From assembly GCA_020137815.1 (NCBI GenBank), contig CM035356.1:5146001-5210000 (forward strand): a stretch of 64,000 nt of DNA, given 5' to 3'. This stretch comes from Hormiphora californensis (Eukaryota > Animalia > Ctenophora). Of the stretch, positions 3,867 to 48,736 are shown piece by piece (within the stretch, counting starts at the first letter, position 1; every line of letters begins with the position of its first letter). The notes beneath the pieces were generated by a model. That model was given only the letters and a program-made list of their open reading frames with translations. It ran no database searches and was not told the origin of the DNA. Made by a program: the position numbers and the translations under genes.

Positions 3867-3872
3867 AACCTC

Positions 3873-4097
3873 TAAAGTCGGATTTTTTGAAACTGTCACC
3901 CCCTGGGTATTTTCAAATTTCGTAAATGACCATAAATCCGGTTCCTGACGAGATAGAGACTTGAAATTTGGAGGTTACCATGATCTTGCTAAGTTCTTCC
4001 GAACCTCCAAATTTCAAGTCTCTATCTTATCAGGAACCGGAGATATGGCAAATTTTGTTATTTTAGGGGGGTGACAGTTTCAAAAAATCCGACTTTA
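3873..4097. mobile_element. Palindromic repeat (taaagtcggattttttgaaactgtcacccc family)
   Basis: Terminal IR of ~30 bp plus an internal hairpin. A related copy lies at 48803-48958. Confidence 0.75.
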
Positions 4098-4261
4098 TAA
4101 TTTGAAGATGTTTTCGGGCCAGCGTTGGAATGCGCTGCAGCCCCCTCATGCGCGCACCCCCGCAACGAGGGGACTGAAGGGAATGCCGCGCGCGCGTTTG
4201 GCCTGAGCCCGGCTGGGTCGAAGATAACTTTGCGGTCGAAAAAACGGCGGTGCTTATAACT

Positions 4262-4302
4262 TTTCAAACTTTTCAACACTACTTTAAACAAATTAATTTG
4301 AG
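4262..4302 (+). other. Genomic copy of the ctenophore spliced-leader exon at a LINE 5' end
   Basis: tttcaaacttttcaacactactttaaacaaattaatttgag is identical to the reverse complement of 48695-48735. It matches the Pleurobrachia SL as I recall it (not checked). Confidence 0.85.
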
Positions 4303-4306
4303 GTTT

Positions 4307-5554
4307 ATGGAACCGCCCCTCATGGGCAGTCCGACGCTAATGGACGGGGCAGCCGTTTCTTCCTCCCATGTCCCTGATCCCACACACCAACTCCAACAAG
4401 CGCTGATCAACGAGAACCTTCTTCACCTGTTGGACGAGGATTCTGAACTTCCTCCGAGAAACCCAGACCGAAAATCATTGTGGGCACTGCTAAAACAGTC
4501 ATACCAGGCGGTATGTGCACTTACTGATGCTCTAGCTCTCAACACTCGTCAAACTCCTTCGTCCAATGAAAATGACCCTCTCGATAATCTCAATGTTATA
4601 GAAGACATGAACAATCATCTAGAAAAATTCAAGGAAGATATACTATCTGCAGTAACCGACAGAATTACTGCTGCGATGAAACCTCTGAACCAGGCAGCGC
4701 CATATGCTCATGCTACTGCTGCTGCTGCTGCTGCAACCCTTACGCCAGTCCGCACTCCTACCCTACCACCTAAACCGTCTTTCAGTGATATTCCCAAACC
4801 AGCACTTCCGTGGCGAAAAATCTACATTGACTGCGAAGAGATTGATATCGACGAGGTCCAGAAGTTAAGTGAAAATGCTCTCTCCAAGACGAAAGTGTCA
4901 AGAATGGACAAAAAGAAAAACTTGGTCATCGTGACCGTACCAGAGAGTGAGGGTCAGAAAGCAGCTGACGCCCTTAGCACGGGTCTACGTACCAAGACAG
5001 TAAGAGTGAGATCAGATCCAACAAGCAAACTCACGGTCCTAAATTTTCCCATCTCTGATTCTATTAATCAAGAAGACGATAGACGAAAACGAAGTGAAAT
5101 CATCATAGAAGTCCTACAGGAGAAGAATCCGGAACTACAGGGCATTGCTGTGGATGTTGTGTCTTACAGAAAAAACTATCGGAATCCTGAACTCGCTACC
5201 ATCGGTCTACGCCTACCCACTCAAACAAAGAGACAACTCCTTCGCCAGAGGGTAGTCTTCGTTGGATACACTGCGTGTAACGTTGTCGACAGAATACACG
5301 TGTTACAGTGCTACAAATGCCAAGGCTTCCATCACTCAGCAGCAGGCTGTGATCGAGACTCAGTGTGTGCACACTGCTCAAAAAACCACGAATCAAAGGA
5401 CTGTCCAGAAAAATCGAACACAGACTTTCTTCCTTCATGTGTAAACTGTTCCCTGAATGGAAAGTCAAAGGACGATGTCTCCCACCGGGCAAACAGTACT
5501 GAGTGTCCGGCATACAAAGCTATATATGAAGCTACAAGGTCAAAAAACGAGTAG
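4307..5554 (+). CDS. LINE ORF1, gag-like nucleic-acid-binding protein with three Cys/His knuckles
   Basis: First ATG after the SL is at 4307. Motifs CYKCQGFHHSAAGC, CAHCSKNHESKDC, CVNC...HRANSTEC; ends SKNE*. Confidence 0.9.
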   Translation: MEPPLMGSPTLMDGAAVSSSHVPDPTHQLQQALINENLLHLLDEDSELPPRNPDRKSLWALLKQSYQAVCALTDALALNTRQTPSSNENDPLDNLNVIEDMNNHLEKFKEDILSAVTDRITAAMKPLNQAAPYAHATAAAAAATLTPVRTPTLPPKPSFSDIPKPALPWRKIYIDCEEIDIDEVQKLSENALSKTKVSRMDKKKNLVIVTVPESEGQKAADALSTGLRTKTVRVRSDPTSKLTVLNFPISDSINQEDDRRKRSEIIIEVLQEKNPELQGIAVDVVSYRKNYRNPELATIGLRLPTQTKRQLLRQRVVFVGYTACNVVDRIHVLQCYKCQGFHHSAAGCDRDSVCAHCSKNHESKDCPEKSNTDFLPSCVNCSLNGKSKDDVSHRANSTECPAYKAIYEATRSKNE

Positions 5555-5562
5555 AGGTAAAG

Positions 5563-8466
5563 TTGGCCACTCTGAACTGTTTTTCTCTGAGAAACAAGGT
5601 TGATGATATTTTACTGACTATCATAGACAATGATATTGATGCTGTTTGTTTGACCGAAACTTGGTTACATGCTATTGAGAGTGCTATTGAGAGTCAAATT
5701 AGTGAGCTTGGGTATAGGTTAGTTAGTGTTGCACGTGGTTCTAGAGGGGGTGGTGTAGCTATTCTCATGAAAAACTCCTTTCATTTCACTCAGTTCAATC
5801 ACTCTTTCTCATCAATGGAATGTATTGAATTATTGCTGACTCATTCAAACTGCATGCCGCTTCGATTACTTGGTGTATACCGCTCCCCATCCCAATCCCA
5901 TTCGGTTTTCTTGGAGGAGTTCGAGACACTACTTCATGGTCTGGCTGAAAGGTCGGGAGAGGTCGTCATAACTGGTGATTTCAACATACATGTACAGAAC
6001 ATACATGATAGTTTTGCCAAATCCTTCTGTGGACTCCTTGATGATCACTACTTTCACCAGTCGGTAAACACCGCCACTCATGTCTCAGGTGGAATACTCG
6101 ATCTAGTTCTCACGAAGAATCTCCCTGATGCTCTTCCAATATCAAATCTTGCTGTAGAGATGACTCCTGCAGCTCCTGACCACGCACTAGTTTCGTTTAA
6201 CCTTCCAATCGGGGCTCCAATTCAGCGGAAGGACTTCATCTCCATTCAACGACGGGATATCAAGAATTTGGATGTGGATGAACTTCGATGCACCATACTG
6301 AAATCCCCACTCTGCGACACAGAAGAATTCCCTAGTGAACTGGTTGAGATCATTAAACTCTATGATGACCTTCTGTCCGAGTTTTTGGACGAACTTGCCC
6401 CGATTGAGAATAAGGTTGTTCCAGAAAATCCTAGCCCTCCCTGGTTTAATAGTGACTGTCAGGCGGCAAAACGGCGACGTAGGAAAGCCGAGCGTGATTT
6501 CAAGGCGTTACTGAAGAGAGATGTTCCCTCGCAGATACTGGTTGAATCTCTGAGGAATCTCAGACGCGAGGCGAAAGAGGCATCACGGTTCATCACTTCA
6601 ACCAGAGACGACTACTATCGGAGGAAACTGGAAGAGGCTGGGAATGACCAATCGGTAATATATCGAATTACGAATGGATTGCTTGGCAAGGAGAAGAATC
6701 CGAGCACACTACCGGAACATGATGACCCAGTTGATCTCTGTCAAAAATTCGTTCAGTATTTCAAGGAAAAAGTGGACAAAATATATTTGGACATCAAGAA
6801 ACTACGGACAGAAGACGTCACCGGAGGACCCGAAACTCCCAGCCCACCACAACTCGATTCCTTTCGTGCATTATCTAGTGAGGAGCTAGTTAAAATTGTT
6901 CGATCAATGAACTACAAACAATGTGACCTTGACCCTCTACCATCAAAATTGGTCGGAGAATGCATCCACGAACTGATGCCGATAATATTGGCTATTGTCA
7001 ACGGTAGCCTTACTAGTGGAGTGTTTCCCTCTACATTGAAAAAGGCCATGATACGACCGGTTTACAAAGGGAAAGGACTCGACTCGAACAGCATGTCAAG
7101 TTATCGACCGATTTCTAATCTGAGTTTTATCTCAAAGATTATTGAAAAGTGCGTTGCTCTACAGATTACAGAACATCTGGAAAGCCATGGACTTCTTGCC
7201 TCAGTTCAATCGGCATACAGACAGAAGCACTCCTGTGAAACAGCAACACTACGTATATTCAATGATCTGCTAGTTCTCACTGATAAACGGAATAAGGCCG
7301 TTCTTCTCCTCTTGGATCTATCCGCTGCTTTCGACACAGTCCCTCACAACATTCTCATTAGCCGATTGGACAAGATGTATGGAATCAAAGGGGTGGCTCT
7401 TGAGTGGTTCCAGTCATATCTGAAAGACCGGGTAGCAGTTGTCAAAATTGGCAAAAGTCAATCACTTCCTGTTAACATCGAAATAGGTGTACCGCAGGGA
7501 TCCATCCTCGGTCCGTTACTTTTTATTCTGTTCACTAAGGACTTGGAAGCTATAGCGGCACGACACAAAACCAAGATTCACCTATACGCTGACGATTCTC
7601 AGCTGTATGTCAGCTTCACAAATGATGCCTGGAACGAATGTGAGTCTCAACTCAAAAAATGTTTCTTGGAAATTAAAGCATGGATGGCATCCAGTTACCT
7701 GAAACTAAACCCGGCAAAAACTGAGTTGATGTTCATTTCCTCTCGAACTGATAATAGTCCAAACCCACTGGACTATTCAGATCCTCTAACATTGTGTGAT
7801 GAGGAAGGACCCCTCTCGGCGACCATCTTTCCCTCCCAGAGTGCCAAGAATCTGGGTGTTGTCTTTGATGAAAAACTTACCATGAAAGAACATGTTTCAA
7901 AAGTTGTGAAGGAATGTAACTATAACCTTGTCAACCTCCGTAGAATTGGAAACAAGCTACAGAGAAGACACAAGGTTCAGCTGGTCCATTCGCTCATCCA
8001 CTCTCGTCTGGACTACTGTAACGGCTTACTAATTGGTGCCGATAAATGTGACATTGCCAGATTGCAAAAAGTGCAGAACGCAGCGACTCGCTTTGTGTTT
8101 GGAAGGTGGCAGTGGAGGGGAGTTACAGACCTCAGGCGGCAATTACACTTTCTTCCAGTTGATGCTAGAATTGAATTTAAAATCTGTCTCATGGTTTTCA
8201 AGTGTCTAAACAATCAAGCACCACAATATCTTCAAAATCTAATAAACAAACGTCAGAGGAAAGGAAAATCACTACGTCACGACGGTGATCTGACCCTTTT
8301 GGAAAGGGATTTTTCAACCAAGTACAAAACCACACAGCGTGCATTTCAAGTTTCAGGCCCGAGGATCTGGAATCAACTTCCCATTGACATTCGCAACTGT
8401 TCAGACGAGGAAACTTTCAAATCCAGACTCAAAACCCACCTGTTTGAAAAGTCGTATGGTGTTTAG
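5563..8466 (+). CDS. LINE ORF2: apurinic-like endonuclease + reverse transcriptase
   Basis: Endonuclease motifs LTETW, GDFN, LDLV, PDH. RT motifs YRPISNL, DLSAAFDTV, GVPQGSILGP, YADD. L2-type C-terminus FKSRLKTHLF. No ATG at the start; the frame is open from 5530. Confidence 0.95.
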   Translation: MATLNCFSLRNKVDDILLTIIDNDIDAVCLTETWLHAIESAIESQISELGYRLVSVARGSRGGGVAILMKNSFHFTQFNHSFSSMECIELLLTHSNCMPLRLLGVYRSPSQSHSVFLEEFETLLHGLAERSGEVVITGDFNIHVQNIHDSFAKSFCGLLDDHYFHQSVNTATHVSGGILDLVLTKNLPDALPISNLAVEMTPAAPDHALVSFNLPIGAPIQRKDFISIQRRDIKNLDVDELRCTILKSPLCDTEEFPSELVEIIKLYDDLLSEFLDELAPIENKVVPENPSPPWFNSDCQAAKRRRRKAERDFKALLKRDVPSQILVESLRNLRREAKEASRFITSTRDDYYRRKLEEAGNDQSVIYRITNGLLGKEKNPSTLPEHDDPVDLCQKFVQYFKEKVDKIYLDIKKLRTEDVTGGPETPSPPQLDSFRALSSEELVKIVRSMNYKQCDLDPLPSKLVGECIHELMPIILAIVNGSLTSGVFPSTLKKAMIRPVYKGKGLDSNSMSSYRPISNLSFISKIIEKCVALQITEHLESHGLLASVQSAYRQKHSCETATLRIFNDLLVLTDKRNKAVLLLLDLSAAFDTVPHNILISRLDKMYGIKGVALEWFQSYLKDRVAVVKIGKSQSLPVNIEIGVPQGSILGPLLFILFTKDLEAIAARHKTKIHLYADDSQLYVSFTNDAWNECESQLKKCFLEIKAWMASSYLKLNPAKTELMFISSRTDNSPNPLDYSDPLTLCDEEGPLSATIFPSQSAKNLGVVFDEKLTMKEHVSKVVKECNYNLVNLRRIGNKLQRRHKVQLVHSLIHSRLDYCNGLLIGADKCDIARLQKVQNAATRFVFGRWQWRGVTDLRRQLHFLPVDARIEFKICLMVFKCLNNQAPQYLQNLINKRQRKGKSLRHDGDLTLLERDFSTKYKTTQRAFQVSGPRIWNQLPIDIRNCSDEETFKSRLKTHLFEKSYGV

Positions 8467-9341
8467 GATGGACTGTCCCATTAATTTATGTGTACATCTA
8501 TACGTCCGCTGCATGCATTGAGCTTCAGAATTATGGAGCAGTGATTCGCTCCACTCTTTTATTTCGTGATTAATCTCTTTTCTATGTAACTTATTACATT
8601 GATTTAACATATATTTTCATACATATAATTATTTCTTACTTAATCAAAAACATTAATTTATTATCTACTTATTATCATCATATCTGGGCTATTAATACCA
8701 CTCATATCATCTTTCTTTTCCACTTTGGGTTCACCGCTTTAGAAGGCTGGTAGGAGTGCTCTGGCGCTCATCGAGTAACTTTGTATGACGTTTATCACTC
8801 TTACTATTATTAGTCAAAAAGCGGGATGTTAAATGTACATTTTGATTGATTGATTGATTGAACTTTGGCTCCTGTAGTCCGTTTGACTTGATTCTTTCAC
8901 CAGTTGTTAGATCTGACGATTATCTACCTTGCTGTTTTTGAGAGAAGTTAATTAGACTTAAGGAGGCTGAGCAATAGCCGTTGAAAGATGGGTTGTTTTC
9001 AAAAAGTGACGTCACAGATTCCTGCAGGGACACCTTTTTTTAAATTTCATTCAAATTTCGATTTTACGGCACTCGATTTTGCGGAGTTTGGTTCATATCT
9101 CCTGTTCCTGATAAGATAGAGACCTGAAACCGGTTGCATTTAAAAGCTCTTATCTTCCTCTTTCCAACGCTACCAAAACGATTTCTGTACCTTATCTGGA
9201 ACCGGAGATATGATTGATTATGTATTCTCCCCCAGCGCGGTATTCCCTCCAGGCCCCTTATATTATATTATAAGGGGCCTGCAACGTATGCCAAGGCCAG
9301 CGTTAAAACCTGGGTGTTTCGTGAGTGCTGACAAACGGTTT

Positions 9342-41766: not shown

Positions 41767-41881
41767 CAGGAACCGACCGACACAAGTAAACGACCAATTA
41801 GAACTCGTTATTTAGGTCACGTGACTGGTTATCAGCCAATCAGGGCCAGGGACCAGTATTTCTTTATTCCATCGGTTCCTC
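41767..41881. mobile_element. hAT-like MITE, copy 4 (diverged), overlapping the 3' end of the BTB ORF
   Basis: Family match; 8-bp TSD gctaagtt at 41759-41766 and 41882-41889. Confidence 0.85.
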
Positions 41882-43486
41882 GCTAAGTTCCACTTTTGGC
41901 CAGTTTGTGCAAAACTCTATCTTACCATTACGTTTCCAGTACATGTAAAGTCGACCAAGAGAACCAGTTACAGTATTTAGATCACTGCACAATGTGAAAT
42001 GAGTAGAGTGATCGTGAATAGAGTCAACGATAATATGTTGTAGAAAATCAGGGTCTTGGTGAAAGTGAGCATCTGTTTTAGCCGCCAAAATTGCTCGATC
42101 CTCCACCAATTTAATGGTAACAACTGGCCATGATTTTTCGTCTTTTACATCCAATAAAACCTCAATCGCAACTTTGCATTCTTTGCCGGACTCTCGTGGG
42201 TTTTCATCACAGTAACTATCTCCATCGTCCATATGGAGGTCGAGGAATTGCACTTCAGAGTGGTGAAATGGCAAGCTCAATCGGGCAAGAGAAATTCTAC
42301 TATAACTCAATTGGCATGACCAGCCCTTAACTGCCTTCATGTACTGACTTAAAACACCTTTTATTTTAGGGTTATGTTCTGGGTAGCTAAAGAAATGTAG
42401 TTCACACACTCCTAAAGAAGCCCAGGATTTCCTCTTATCCAGTGCCACTGTTATCGCCTTAACTACTTCCGGTAAAGATGAGTCACCAAACACGTCACAG
42501 CAGTATTCAAGGGAAGATACAAACTGGATAAATGATTTGATCCTCGGATCCTTATCAAGCACTTTAACAGCATCCAAGAATGAGGTACATCGACCAAGAG
42601 CGGGTATTTCGATCGGGTAAACAATCACATTTTGCAGATTGGTGCTATTGCTACTAGGATTATTTTGGAGACTAGTAACATTAGAGACGGGAACCCTTGC
42701 AAAAATCTTAAAGAGGGACATCAGATCTTCCTTAGAAAGACATAGTTCCATAGTTTCCAATAGTCGCTCATACACATTTTGGTCCGAGTGGAAGCAAAGT
42801 GTCAGAGGTGCACTCCTTAGGAACCTCTTTTCAACATCAGATAGTTTCACAGGATGGGGGTTACCTTTAAAATTCTCGATTAGCCACTCGTATAGAACAG
42901 ATCCTTCCTTGCTACTAGCCAGGGATAGACACAGGTCTGTGTTCACGAACTCCTGTTGGTTAGGATCACGGGAGATGAAATCTTTAACCAGCGCCAATCG
43001 AAGAGGAGGTACAACTTGTAGCCCGGTACTAAGAGCATCTTGTAAGTCTCTGTTATTCCTCTCCTTGAGGATGTAGGCTGCTTCTTCGAATAGGAACAAC
43101 GCCAGCTCCAGAGATTCAGAAGTCAGTCCGGAGCAGAGGCCGGTATAGAACTTCAGACACTCTTCAGCCATCCATTCGACTTTGAACACTGCACTCAGCT
43201 TGTTGACCTCTCGAAAGTTTTCCCTGGTCAGAACTGCTGTAGTGCCAGTGTAACAGCAATCCACAAAACTTGCAACTGACGAGTGGGAAAACTCCTCCAC
43301 GTCGAGTTCCTTCATCTGCTGCTTTCCCACTAAGTCACAAATCACTAAACTGTTCATGGCCAATGGGAATGAACTTGTCCGGACCACGTCACCTCCCCTG
43401 CACATCAGTTGCAGATCGTTTAGACCATTCAACTCCAGGTAGTGTCTACCAAAGTTCATTGGCATCGTGCAGGTCTTTACAGCCAT
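41864..43486 (-). CDS. Intronless 540-aa protein with an N-terminal BTB/POZ-like domain
   Basis: Long open ORF. DLQLMCRGG..LAMNS..ELDVEEFSHSSVASFVDCCYTG resembles BTB. Acceptor-like ctctcctgtag ends 7 nt before the ATG. Confidence 0.7.
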   Translation of the reverse strand: MAVKTCTMPMNFGRHYLELNGLNDLQLMCRGGDVVRTSSFPLAMNSLVICDLVGKQQMKELDVEEFSHSSVASFVDCCYTGTTAVLTRENFREVNKLSAVFKVEWMAEECLKFYTGLCSGLTSESLELALFLFEEAAYILKERNNRDLQDALSTGLQVVPPLRLALVKDFISRDPNQQEFVNTDLCLSLASSKEGSVLYEWLIENFKGNPHPVKLSDVEKRFLRSAPLTLCFHSDQNVYERLLETMELCLSKEDLMSLFKIFARVPVSNVTSLQNNPSSNSTNLQNVIVYPIEIPALGRCTSFLDAVKVLDKDPRIKSFIQFVSSLEYCCDVFGDSSLPEVVKAITVALDKRKSWASLGVCELHFFSYPEHNPKIKGVLSQYMKAVKGWSCQLSYSRISLARLSLPFHHSEVQFLDLHMDDGDSYCDENPRESGKECKVAIEVLLDVKDEKSWPVVTIKLVEDRAILAAKTDAHFHQDPDFLQHIIVDSIHDHSTHFTLCSDLNTVTGSLGRLYMYWKRNGKIEFCTNWPKVELSEEPME

Positions 43487-43674
43487 GTGATCTCTACAGG
43501 AGAGTGGATGTGTTAATGGGAGAGGAAGAGAGGTAGGGATATATAACAGGTTTACAGGAATAATATAGATAACCAGAGTTTTACAAGTTTACAAATAAAG
43601 TTATGACAACAGATCTTCCCTTTATGGGTCCACCTAAATAAAAATCAAAATAATCGTCTCCTCACGCCCTATCT

Positions 43675-45750
43675 CTAGACACATACAGCACATTGAGGGG
43701 AAATATCGTTGGGAACTGACGGATAACCTCTGACAGGGGGACGGTCATAAAAGCCTGTCAGGTAATTGCCCAGGGATGATTTGAATTGACCTAAGCTTCC
43801 GCAAGAGTTAACAGCCGCTGGCAACCTGTTCCACAGGTGAGCAGCTCTCGGTCCGAAGGAAGAATGGAACTGATTCGCTCTCCAGGTCTCAGCCCGATAT
43901 GGAAACGGTGGTGGGACTAACCTCATACCCAACCTTGCACTGTGTTGGAACACAAGGTTTGCTGAATTCGGAACAAACCCATGGATCGTCTTCCACACAT
44001 GTATCAACATATAACGTTGTCTTCTGCGTTGAAGAGACATCAGGTTGAGAACCTTCAATCTTCCCCAATAATCATGATTCTGCATTCCCTCGAGACGTCT
44101 TGTAAAACACCTTTGAACGTTCTCAATTGACTTGATGTCACCAGCCTTTGTTGGGTTCCAGACCAGGCAACAATACTCCAAAATTGGTCTGACCAGTGAT
44201 TTGAAGAGTTGTAACATTACCTCTGGTGACCGGTCTCTAAAAACACTGAAAATCCATCCAGATAAAAGAGAAGCTTTCCGCACAATGATGGAAATGTGCT
44301 TGGACCACGAGCCATCTGAAGACATCTGAACACCCAAGTCACGGACATCGGGTTCGGGAATCAGTTGAACTCCAGAGTCTGTAGTGTACGAACTCATTTC
44401 AGTTGAAAAAGGAAGTTCCTTGAAGATTGCTGATTTGTTCAGTCTATAACTCAAGAGCTGAAACTTTTGATCATGGAGGACCATATTATTCACTTTGGCC
44501 CATTCCGTGACCCTCAGAAGATCTGCCTGCAAGCCAGCCTGATCGACCATATCTGAAATAGCTTTCATTAACTTAGTATCATCAGCAAAGGTGAGACACA
44601 TACTGCCATCCAGTACAGACTCCAGATCCAGTATGTAAATAAGGAAGAGAAGAGGACCCAGGACACTGCCCTGCGCCACCCCGCTGAGCACCTCCACCCA
44701 TGATGTCCTCACCCCGTCCACCATAACACACTGTTGCCTACCCAGGATCCACGCACTGATCCACTGAAGTAGTTTTCCTCCGATCCCGTACCTTTTCAAC
44801 TTGGCCAGCAGCACATAGATATCCACTGAATCGAACGCTTTCGAAAAATCTAAGTAGATCACGTCTACTTCACGGTCCCCACAGAGCTCTGTCAGGATGA
44901 AATCAACATGGGATAACAGTTGGGACATAGTACTACGACCTTTCCGAAGTCCATGTTGTGTTTCACTCTGTAATTCCATATCGTCCAGATAATCAGCTAT
45001 CCTCTGTCTAACAAGCCGCTCAAACACCTTCGACAAGTGACTGGTGATAGACACCGGCCGATAATTCTCTGTTCTGGATTTAGACCCCTTTTTAAATATG
45101 GGTGTTATGAACTGTTGTTTAAGACAATTTGGAACAGTTCCGTTTGCAAATGACTTGTTCCATAACATCCATATAGGATAAGACAAGCTGCTGTTACATC
45201 GTTTCAGAATACATGAAGGAATACAGTCCGGAGGTGAGGCCGAAAAAAGTTTCAGTTCCTCCAATGCACTCTGGATACAATTCTGTGAAAACTCCATGCT
45301 GGTCAGGATCTCACCAAGGTCCTCAATGTTACCCGCTGCCACAGAGGGATCAATTGCCGCAGGATCGCTGAAAACGCTAGCAAACTGATGTTGTAGTAAG
45401 TTAGCCTTCTCCAGGGGGTCCACAGTTAAGGAACCATCCGCACGCTCAAGGGGGGCAACTGATGATTTAACCTTGGAGTTCTTTTTAACGTGAGTATAAA
45501 AGTACTTGGGGTTCACCTTGATAGCACCCACAGCCTTCCTCTCCACTTTCTTGTCCCTTGATATCAGATGGGATTTGATTTTCTGAATTAAGCATTCCAT
45601 CTCCGATTTCCACTTTACCGAATCGTTCTCACGTTTATCAAGTTTACGCCTCCTGCTAGTCAGATGCCTGAGTTCTTTGTCTACAAGGTCCTTCCGCATT
45701 TTCTTCACTCGACAATGAGCCCGGTGTCCCGATTTTTTTTTCACGCCTGG
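43675..45750 (-). pseudogene. ORF2 3' part: reverse transcriptase
   Basis: NYRPVSIT, YLDFSKAFDSV, SGVAQGSVLGPLLF, FADD, VRDLGV, LVRPILEY. Confidence 0.92.
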
Positions 45751-46508
45751 AATTTTCATTTTGGGAGCTCGTTTTGCTGCAGGAATTTTACTATTTGCTG
45801 CAGTCATGGATAGGGATTTTGCCGTCCTAAAATACCCCGGCAGTCCCAGTACCCCTAACATTGGAATATTTCCCTACTGCAGTCCCTATAAGGTTGGAAT
45901 ATTCCTTGGAATATTCCATCTTTGCAGTGCCTGCTGCAGTGCTGCTGCAGTAGTGGAAATTCCTTGGAATATTCCATCTCTGCAGTGCCTGCTGCAGTGC
46001 TGCTGCAGCAGTGGAAATGTCTTGGAATATTCCACTCAGGGACTGCAACAGTGACTATAACGATCTCACCCCTTTGTAAAGCTATGGGGGAAAAAGAGAG
46101 CTATGTTAAAGTATGAATCTCTCTTTTCTTCCCCTTCCCTGCTGCAGTGCTGCAGCCACTGCAGAGATGGAAAATTCCGAGAAAATTCCACTCAGGTACT
46201 GCAACAGTGACTATAACGATCTCACCCCTTTGTAAAGCTATGGGGAAAAAAGAGATCTTTGTTAAAGTATGAATCTCTCTTTTCTTTCCCCCTCCCCCTT
46301 ACTCGACTGTTGTCGGTGCATTACGCACAACTGGGGCATGCCCCAACATATTCTATCTCTCTGTTACACACTGTTAACACTGCAGCACTGCTGCAGCTGT
46401 ATCTCTGTGTGTAAGTATGGGAAATATCTTCCCCAATATTTTTTCATTTTGCTGCAAGGATTTTGTTTTGCTGCAGAATTTTTGCATTTATCTTTCCTTC
46501 ATATTCCA
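45748..46508. mobile_element. ~760-bp insertion splitting LINE ORF2, with internal duplications
   Basis: Removing it rejoins ..VPISG and GVKKK... Short inverted ends ctggaat/attccag; internal repeats of tgcagtgctgc/ggaatattcc and a ~100-bp duplication. Boundaries approximate. Confidence 0.65.
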
Positions 46509-47464
46509 GAGATCGGGACACTGGGACAATGAGACTTGACAACCTTGAAAACTCTGTCTCGAATAGCTTCCACAAACAGTGACCCATCCTCATCACCCAG
46601 GGCCTCGCATTCAACTAGCAGTTGGTCCCAATCAGTAGCTGCGAGGTCAGCATCGATACTCGTAAAGTCGGCTGAATGGAGATCCAGTTGCCGATAACCT
46701 TCAAGTTTACTAGGCAGAAATAGACTTGCTGGACCGAGAGGGTTGAAAGTGAGGTGGCATGACACCCACAAATGATCTGATACACCCTCATCAGTAATGG
46801 AAATGTTGCTGAAGTAGTCCGGTCGGTTGGTGAACACTAGATCTAACGTATTGTTGCCCCTGGTAGGGCCCTCTACAACCTGGGATAGAAAGTTCGTGTC
46901 CATAAAGTCCGATACTACATTGTAGTTGGGCTGATCAACCGGAACCGATGACCCGTCAACCCAATTGAAGAGAGGGAGATTGAAATCCCCTAATACTACC
47001 ACTTCTGGTAACCCACTCTCACTGTACTTATCTATAAATGACTGTAATGTGTTCATGAGTCTTTGGAAGTCCAACACACTTGACTCTGATCGATACACAG
47101 CTGCAAATATAGTATTTATTTGGCTAACATAGACAGCTTTTAAATTGTTATACAAACTAGCAAAACATATACTATCAGAAACAGCCAGCGACGAGTGAAC
47201 ATACAAAGCACAGCCTCCACCAACTCTGCTCACTCTGTCACTCCTATAAACGTTATATCCTGGTATCTCAACCTGAGCATCTGAGTGATACCCTTTAAAC
47301 CAGGTTTCAGTTACTGCAATGGCTACTGTCGGAGTTTTCTCATTTCTTATACAATCTCTAATAAGACCGAGTTTCCAGCACGTATCACCTGCCGGACTTA
47401 AACTCCTTGCATTAAGCAGTAGTAGTTTACTTGTAGTCGAAACAGTCCCTAACGATCTCTCCAA
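46509..47464 (-). pseudogene. ORF2 5' part: APE endonuclease
   Basis: LNARSL, VTETWF, GGGCALYV, GDFN, PTRGNNTLDLVF, SDH. Confidence 0.92.
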
Positions 47465-48657
47465 TAACTTTGATTCGGGCGTATCTTCTCTATATCCTCG
47501 AACCTCTGGTCCAGCATCTGTTTCATTCTCACTTCCATTCTCCCTAACAGTCTCTCTAAAAAAGCATCATCGTCGAATCGGGATGGTTCACGGGTGCCAT
47601 TGGAGCTACCACTCGGATTTTGGGATCGTGGTATCTCCGTATCTCTAGCGTAGGTCGGCTCCGCCCTTCCGACACCAGAAGACATGTTTCTGCTAGGATT
47701 GGAATTCTCGTCCACTGCAACTCGACGGGTGTTCTTGAGATGCTGAAAACGACAGTCCTTCTTGAGGCATTCGTGCCTGAACTGGGAAGAGCGGCAGATA
47801 GGTGGATGGTAATATCGACACTCTTTCCCCAGCTGACAGCCGTATTTCTTCATGGACCCATGGGCACAGTATCTCCGGCACATTGGGGGGTGTGACTTCT
47901 GGCATGAAACTCCGTCGATCTTCTTCGTTCCGTAGCGGCCGTACTTGCACCGATTTTGTAGGTAGTGTTGGCACACCGGGATCGGCTTATCGTCTTTCTT
48001 CTTGCTCTCATCAGCCTCCTCCACACTGTTGATTTTCTGACCGGGTGGCTTCTGCTGGTGTTCTGGTTTGGTGTCTCCAACCTCTGACATGAAGCTGAAC
48101 CTCCTCCTTAGGGCGTCGTCCGAAGCCTCACTTGCAGCACTCTTGGGAGGGCTTGCAAACTCCCCACTGGAACCCACAAATTTTTCCAGTGTGTGTTTCT
48201 TGCAACACATGTGACAAATCCACTTGAAACCTGGAATAGAGCACAGCGGTTGCTCCTGGATTAAGGTGCAATTATGGCTCCCTGCCCCACAACTTCCACA
48301 ATTGAACCTGGATTTCTCACACCTTTTTATCACATAGTCTTTCTCGCATGCCTCACAAAATTGCGGAAATAGACTCTCAATAGCCATGATCAGCCAATCA
48401 ATGAGACTGGCCTTGTCACGGTACCGTTTTTCCTTTCCGTCCTCAGTGCGGGGTTTCCCCCCAAAGAATAGCGCAGCCTCCTCCAAAACAATGTCCGTAA
48501 AACGATCAAGTGCCTTGAGATTGGTCTGGTACCTTTTAGCTGTAGGACTGTAGGCCTTCACGATCCGTTTCACCTCATCACTACAGTCGGGGTCATCACA
48601 TAGCTCCGACAGCACTGCTTTCTGTTTCACTAGTATCTCGTTTGACATATCCGGCAT
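47449..48657 (-). CDS. LINE ORF1 with PHD finger and CCCH-like repeats
   Basis: CEAC..CGSC...HNC..WICHMC (PHD), then CQHYLQNRC..C..H, CRRY..C..C.YYH, CRSS..C..C..H. Confidence 0.85.
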   Translation of the reverse strand: MPDMSNEILVKQKAVLSELCDDPDCSDEVKRIVKAYSPTAKRYQTNLKALDRFTDIVLEEAALFFGGKPRTEDGKEKRYRDKASLIDWLIMAIESLFPQFCEACEKDYVIKRCEKSRFNCGSCGAGSHNCTLIQEQPLCSIPGFKWICHMCCKKHTLEKFVGSSGEFASPPKSAASEASDDALRRRFSFMSEVGDTKPEHQQKPPGQKINSVEEADESKKKDDKPIPVCQHYLQNRCKYGRYGTKKIDGVSCQKSHPPMCRRYCAHGSMKKYGCQLGKECRYYHPPICRSSQFRHECLKKDCRFQHLKNTRRVAVDENSNPSRNMSSGVGRAEPTYARDTEIPRSQNPSGSSNGTREPSRFDDDAFLERLLGRMEVRMKQMLDQRFEDIEKIRPNQSYWRDR

Positions 48658-48694
48658 CGTCTTCCGGGGTGGTCAGGCAGACATTTGGCTGAAA

Positions 48695-48736
48695 CTCAAA
48701 TTAATTTGTTTAAAGTAGTGTTGAAAAGTTTGAAAC
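48695..48736 (-). other. Second genomic spliced-leader copy at a LINE 5' end
   Basis: Reverse complement is gtttcaaacttttcaacactactttaaacaaattaatttgag, ending 37 nt before the ORF1 ATG. Confidence 0.85.

Follow-up and report, generated by a model that had tools for sequence, protein, structure and literature searches.

How does a retrotransposon come to begin with the spliced leader of its host? The question is raised by an element at 4258-8866 of the window, a 64,000-nt stretch of the genome of the ctenophore Hormiphora californensis (assembly GCA_020137815.1, contig CM035356.1, positions 5,146,001 to 5,210,000). The element appears to be a young, intact long interspersed nuclear element (LINE) with two open reading frames (ORFs) encoding an apurinic/apyrimidinic endonuclease (APE) and a reverse transcriptase (RT), and it is headed by a copy of the spliced leader (SL). 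The answer proposed here, to which we give a probability of about 0.85, is that the LINE RNA was trans-spliced to the SL, reverse-transcribed to near its 5' end and inserted into a dispersed repeat, as part of what would be a promoterless cycle.

The 41-mer at the head of the element matches exactly nt 4-44 of the H. californensis leader, a 44-mer given in Schultz et al. 2021 (PMC8527503) and reported there on 56% of Iso-Seq reads, and nt 3-43 of the exon as read in the SL RNA genes of the genome. Two matches were observed in the window, against 0.00 expected by chance. The first-pass annotation, made from the letters alone, had described a 41-nt motif followed by GTTT and the ORF1 ATG, had matched the motif to the spliced-leader exon of Pleurobrachia, and had proposed that the LINE RNA was trans-spliced and then copied almost to its cap. 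The order of the parts was confirmed (Table 1), the motif proved to be an exact match to the leader, and the proposed history is supported at the DNA level by the join described below.

The splice-like join and the insertion site

The leader ends exactly at the 3' end of the SL exon, and the LINE part starts exactly behind an AG. Sibling copies retain CCCTAG directly before GTTTATGG, and the AG acceptor found directly before GTTT in sibling copies is either CCCTAG or CCGCAG. Since the direct junction falls exactly behind an AG that is kept in the longer heads, it corresponds to a 3' splice site. All heads examined, which comprise 61 distinct downstream sequences on clustering and 63 non-gene heads by flank, have this exon-boundary join, and the SL copy at 4262-4302 carries neither the conserved upstream block nor the GTAAG intron nor the Sm site of true SL genes. 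Judged from sequence, such a join is the signature of splicing and not of template switching.

The 3' end of the family was found in about 17 copies and the 5' end in eight, about 9 of the 17 lacking it. All copies are less than 1% diverged, with branch lengths up to 0.0044. The eight full-length copies lie on seven chromosomes with different flanks, and seven of them are SL-headed; 3' ends and target-site duplications (TSDs) were examined in the window copy, and the other seven full-length copies were compared at their heads. In five of the eight, one with a 5'-truncated leader, the leader of the true SL RNA genes (SL-A) is joined directly to GTTTATGG (+0), while one head reads SL-A+ATCTTGCCCTAG+GTTTATGG (+12; L036) and another has the same order behind a second leader, SL-B (SL-B+ATCTTGCCCTAG+GTTTATGG, +12; L033), so that two AG acceptors 12 nt apart are used in these heads. 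A sister family, about 68% identical, has the same three head types (SL-A+0, SL-A+12 and SL-B+12) with ATCTCACCGCAG as its 12-mer, the order leader+ATCTCACCGCAG+GTTTATGG being found in L042 and, with SL-B, in L041. In the family tree, +0 and +12 heads stand on either side of the sole supported split (96/95). The mixture of two leaders and two acceptors over that split indicates that leaders were added repeatedly by trans-splicing, which argues that neither one inherited ancestral head nor RT template switching explains the heads.

The insertion site was reconstructed as a 36-mer across the junction with 4264-8866 removed. In the 110.7-Mb, 45-contig assembly searched throughout, this predicted empty site had 212 matches at up to 3 mismatches, 10 of them exact, and the reversed 36-mer had none. 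The 212 paralogous sites hold a single AACTTT and no SL, and one empty copy (L042:474-672) runs contiguously over the junction at 98.5%. Thus the SL, the LINE and its tail arrived together and 6 bp were duplicated, as had been proposed from a TSD overlapping the motif by 2 nt. Paralogous empty sites were used because both flanks consist of a very abundant repeat, which makes the allelic empty site unreadable from contigs. The element thus lies in a dispersed repeat that holds no SL, and no SL intron or Sm site adjoins it. Since SL nt 3-4 (gene numbering, AGTTTC...) are also present in the duplicated target, the unambiguous SL copy begins 2-4 nt short of the SL RNA 5' end. The flanking repeat itself (window 3870-4263 and 8867-9100), which may be a MITE or a SINE, is partly palindromic and of very high copy number, with at least 319 candidate copies, many of them 98-100% identical, and a contig depth 100- to 1000-fold above that of the LINE.

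The features expected of an APE-type LINE were all found: an RT, an APE N-terminal to it, a TSD, a simple-repeat tail and 5'-truncated copies. Pfam placed RVT_1 at aa 511-766 of ORF2 (5.8e-31; RT at about 7093-7860), and N-terminal to it, at aa 2-187, Exo_endo_phos (6.8e-11) and Exo_endo_phos_2 (2.1e-07; APE at about 5566-6117). These were the only domains that Pfam found in ORF2, with no restriction-like endonuclease (RLE) C-terminal to the RT, and ORF1 had no Pfam match. The ORF2 frame is open from 5539, overlapping the end of ORF1, and has no ATG at its start. A conserved hairpin (GCCCC-N3-5-GGGC followed by AG) was found in 15 of 53 distinct heads from several LINE families, against a background of 1.2%, and lies 12-24 nt behind the leader in L001, L007, L010, L016, L022, L024, L029 and L030. 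As it falls within the 5' untranslated region (UTR) of some families but within ORF1 of others, it would be a signal at the RNA or DNA level.

Leader genes and leader copies in the genome

True SL-A RNA genes, in which the leader is followed by GTAAGCTGAG, were found at 15 sites genome-wide, and no other leader copies continue in this way. These genes have a conserved block upstream of the exon, a GTAAG donor, a downstream hairpin, an Sm-like site (CCUUUUGG) and a terminal hairpin. Some are interleaved with 5S rRNA genes, and others form divergent pairs about 550-630 bp apart (Table 1). Tandem linkage of SL and 5S genes is a classical arrangement. The exon start in these genes reads ...cagc/AGTTTCAAAC, so the leading G of the published leader probably came from the cap or from a cDNA adaptor. 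The second leader, SL-B, ends in ...ACTATTTATTGAG, has an 18-mer with 179 dispersed copies in the genome, and heads copies of both the LINE family (L033) and the sister family (L041). Given a single gene-like locus (Table 1), it is taken to be a putative second SL RNA.

Against these 15 genes stand 507 genome copies of the 41-mer at up to 3 mismatches. Sorting such copies by what follows them, as the first-pass annotation had suggested, gave SL RNA genes or retroelement heads in the sampled loci, and none of the first 30 sites, unselected by type, was an SL RNA gene. Among the 79 loci fetched out of the 507, on which the family counts rest, the leader precedes at least 30 unrelated sequences or element families, most of them with a long ORF starting within about 70 nt. 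The leader begins at nt 1-3 in 51 of the 63 distinct non-gene heads, a count with some bias as the first 30 loci were picked with nt 3-43, and G is found at nt 2 in 31 of these 51, against about 25% expected. This clustering of 5' extents fits a run-off of reverse transcription near the cap.

The accessible text of Schultz et al. treats 718 leader sequences (>90%) in Hormiphora as leader loci, notes that leaders on Iso-Seq reads were mis-mapped to the nearest leader copy, and in that part holds no description of the 15 loci as SL RNA genes (PMC8527503). The present results correct this reading, the Hormiphora 'leader loci' being mostly heads of retroelements. As real SL RNA genes there remain the 15 SL-A genes, some of which alternate with 5S rRNA genes, and one SL-B-like locus.

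Table 1. Parts of the leader-headed LINE (window positions) and spliced-leader gene loci of the genome
Feature	Position	Strand	Remark
Target-site duplication AACTTT, left copy	4258..4263	.	last 2 nt shared with SL copy
Copy of host spliced-leader exon	4262..4302	+	identical to exon of true SL RNA genes
GTTT, sole element-derived 5' UTR	4303..4306	+	ORF1 ATG follows at 4307
ORF1, 415 aa	4307..5554	+	three Cys/His knuckle-like motifs near C-terminus
Small GC hairpin motif GCCCC-N4-GGGC-AG	4315..4329	+	recurs behind SL in several LINE families
ORF2, 967 aa, no internal stops	5563..8466	+	APE and RT domains
3' UTR	8467..8841	+	3' end common to about 17 copies
(TTGA)5 microsatellite tail	8842..8861	+	AACTTT directly after
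Target-site duplication AACTTT, right copy	8861..8866	.	single AACTTT in paralogous empty sites
SL-A genes	G000:C13:3181600-3195400 (L073, L074)		interleaved with 5S rRNA genes, period about 745 bp
SL-A genes	C5:6431347/6431980		head-to-head divergent pair
SL-A genes	C9:4528291/4528847		head-to-head divergent pair
SL-A genes	C11:221863/222496		head-to-head divergent pair
SL-A gene	C12:4023264		
SL-B gene-like locus, single	G000:C13:2741219-2741282		exon ending ...AAAACTATTTATTGAG, GTAAGCTGA donor, 6-bp hairpin, UCUUUUGG

Proposed trans-splicing of the LINE RNA and its alternatives

The DNA evidence shows that the host SL was added to the LINE RNA by trans-splicing, the acceptor being an AG that shortly precedes the ORF1 ATG. 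Target-primed reverse transcription of the capped, SL-headed RNA then came to within 2-4 nt of the RNA 5' end, and APE-type insertion into a copy of the high-copy repeat made the 6-bp duplication. The 4-nt spacer between leader and ORF1 suggests that the family has no promoter of its own, in which case a genomic copy would rely on read-through transcription from the host for its expression, and trans-splicing would then free the element RNA and supply both its cap and its 5' UTR. Either of two sites could act as acceptor, namely CCCTAG of the element or the terminal AG of the leader that had been embedded one cycle earlier, and the 5' end of the LINE would be rebuilt in each generation. In every extant 12-mer copy, ATCT has no AG in front of it other than the last one in the embedded leader. 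As SL-A and SL-B were both placed before the 12-mer in two long-separated families, reuse of that terminal AG as acceptor would be the simplest reading.

RNA and further DNA evidence came from contigs of two samples of one study (S1 and S2), of one sample of a second study (S3) and of one oligo-dT environmental RNA library. Low-depth pieces of ORF1, ORF2 and the 3' UTR, all 99% identical, were present in the latter, so that the family is likely to be expressed. A metagenome scan with the junction 21-mer gave no match, and the exact ORF1 sequence was absent from the protein collection searched.

Several observations weigh against the proposed cycle. No SL-to-ORF1 bridge was found in the contigs of S1, S2, S3 or the oligo-dT run, the contigs breaking at the 41-nt repeat, and the depth of the RNA run over 4334-4667 was zero. 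One full-length copy (L032) has no SL, and its rearranged head of about 26-44 nt abuts an unrelated dispersed repeat; the long ordinary 5' UTRs that the first-pass annotation had named as contrary evidence were seen neither here nor in the seven SL-headed copies. As an acceptor, the terminal GAG of the leader looks weak, G at -3 being disfavoured, and insect LINEs such as jockey and the I factor have promoters within their first tens of nucleotides. SL-SL tandem junctions, sought as a trace of re-splicing, were not found in the genome, so that no trace is left of any re-splicing at the 5' AG of the leader itself.

The poor acceptor and the lack of tandems, together with the same SL-A+0 head in five of the eight full-length copies, would favour an alternative in which an ancestor gained the leader once and its descendants inherited it, transcription being driven by a promoter inside the SL or the start of ORF1. 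In some SL RNA genes of nematodes, the SL exon indeed belongs to the promoter. We nevertheless consider this history unlikely, since the family has three head types that are found again in its 68%-identical sister, the heads are mixed over the one split of the tree that has support, at least 30 unrelated families begin with exactly this leader, and the leaders borne by transposable elements (TEs) do not have the conserved block found upstream of true SL genes.

A jump of the RT from the 5' end of the LINE RNA onto the abundant SL RNA, present as an Sm small nuclear ribonucleoprotein, would resemble the origin of U6/L1 chimeras, and LINE RTs are known to jump to small nuclear RNAs (PMC11838501). 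Such a jump would start at the 3' end of the SL RNA and bring its intron and Sm site, whereas every head stops exactly at the last G of the exon, no SL intron was found in the 63 non-gene heads, and the LINE part begins exactly behind the AG acceptors seen in sibling copies; template switching is therefore very improbable. That the LINE targeted a pre-existing genomic SL, either a gene or an older retrocopy, as known SL-associated LINEs with their site-specific insertion might suggest, or that the SL-LINE join is an assembly artefact of cDNA reads, Iso-Seq data for the same individual being described in PMC8527503, is hardly conceivable in view of empty-site paralogs without any SL, a TSD that brackets SL plus LINE, an APE rather than an RLE, eight loci with different flanks on seven chromosomes, and DNA contigs of three samples from two studies in which many different sequences precede the leader.

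Trans-splicing of the LINE RNA could be extended to a wider and more tentative proposal, for which the odds fall somewhat short of even: ctenophore retroelements of many families (APE LINEs, RT-first elements and those with Penelope-like heads) may be obligately promoterless parasites of trans-splicing that owe their cap and 5' end to host read-through transcription and the trans-spliceosome and use the leader AG as the next acceptor. If so, their 5' end would renew itself and escape the 5' erosion that affects LINEs, and most 'leader loci' (718 in Hormiphora and, by extrapolation, 491 in Mnemiopsis) would be the fossil record of this cycle.

Comparison with known systems

NeSL-1 of nematodes and SLACS, CZAR, CRE1 and CRE2 of trypanosomatids are LINEs with an RLE that insert site-specifically into SL RNA genes. 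Like them, the present element is a LINE physically joined to spliced-leader sequence, but here the whole leader is joined at the exon boundary, the endonuclease is of APE type and the target is not an SL gene, which sets it apart from the NeSL/SLACS/CZAR/CRE group. The first-pass annotation had drawn the same distinction, and the Pfam assignment of the APE and the SL-free target repeat bear it out.

A close parallel is found in the SL-tagged retrogenes of dinoflagellates, described as a 'recycling of processed cDNAs' (PMC6050394, PMC5585692, PMC12014239). There, too, a trans-spliced leader is reverse-transcribed with the RNA into the 5' end of a retrocopy, and renewed trans-splicing is possible. 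The dinoflagellate cases differ in that host genes are mobilised in trans and truncated relic leaders stand in tandem, while in Hormiphora an autonomous LINE is itself headed by the leader. Relics and tandems are lacking here because the Hormiphora SL has an AG only at its two ends.

In Hydra, the SL was found on about 30% of TE Iso-Seq reads (PMC12220107), and for parasitic flatworms a single sentence suggests that 597 SL-like loci within LTR and LINE elements, which were discarded, have the same origin (PMC12582326). In both, as here, the idea is that the host SL is added to TE transcripts, which may carry it along on integration. The flatworm leaders are partial and were discarded as noise, without analysis of junctions, TSDs or families, and the Hydra evidence comes from RNA only, in contrast to the genomic intact element, empty site, two leaders, two acceptors and genome-wide count obtained here.

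Two other systems share single traits with the Hormiphora element. The R2, RTE and L1Tc LINEs carry 5' self-cleaving ribozymes resembling that of hepatitis delta virus (PMC3383444); they are likewise promoter-poor, co-transcribed with host sequence and delimited at the 5' end by RNA processing, but use a ribozyme of their own that leaves an uncapped 5' OH, instead of the host trans-spliceosome and capped leader proposed here. The U6/L1 chimeric retrocopies (PMC11838501) likewise have small nuclear RNA sequence joined to a LINE insertion at its 5' end, with variable joins made by RT template switching rather than joins at splice sites.

No paper describing SL-headed LINE copies in ctenophores was found in the literature searched. 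The idea is already present for dinoflagellates, Hydra and flatworms, and the pattern reported here is genome-wide, not a single oddity. It offers a different answer to how a LINE keeps a functional 5' end: host trans-splicing can cap and define the RNA, and the element would need only an AG for its 5' end. SL-headed copies could moreover serve as time-stamped records both of where trans-splicing took place and of reverse transcription over the full length, and would be useful for the annotation of ctenophore genomes.

Other leader-headed sequences

Alternative acceptors were also seen in other families (L001 versus L010/L014/L020; L005, L007, L016 and L025). Leader+GAAGATG and leader+CAG+GAAGATG form a NAGNAG-like pair, and some heads of other families retain a canonical-looking TTTCAG right behind the leader. 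One leader-headed element has its RT in the first ORF (L062) and another a PHD-finger ORF1 (L004). In L015 (near 1541, minus orientation), a short ORF that ends at a GTAAAG donor-like site comes after the leader, and this leader could be the head of an intron-containing host gene rather than of a TE.

In L002, L003, L009, L012, L019 and L021 (near 1541, leader orientation), the leader is followed directly by a sequence resembling a hammerhead core (CUGAUGA/CUGAAGA-stem-GAAAC). A hammerhead ribozyme was considered for these CUGAUGA...GAAAC heads, and no Rfam match was obtained at gathering score or at E<=1. Some of them form head-to-head inverted leader pairs, e.g. C3:400014/400063 and C2:8210001/8210056, which resemble the termini of Penelope-like elements.

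A search of the window for a third, decayed SL head, with up to 3 mismatches allowed in 24 nt, found none. The second window copy of the leader heads an unrelated LINE on the minus strand (43600-48735), in which the identical leader is followed by TTTCAG and then by the start of a 402-aa ORF1. Its APE (46499-47464) and RT (43675-45861) lie in separate ORFs, indicating that its ORF2 is broken, and a BTB-domain ORF follows it on the same strand at 41864-43486.

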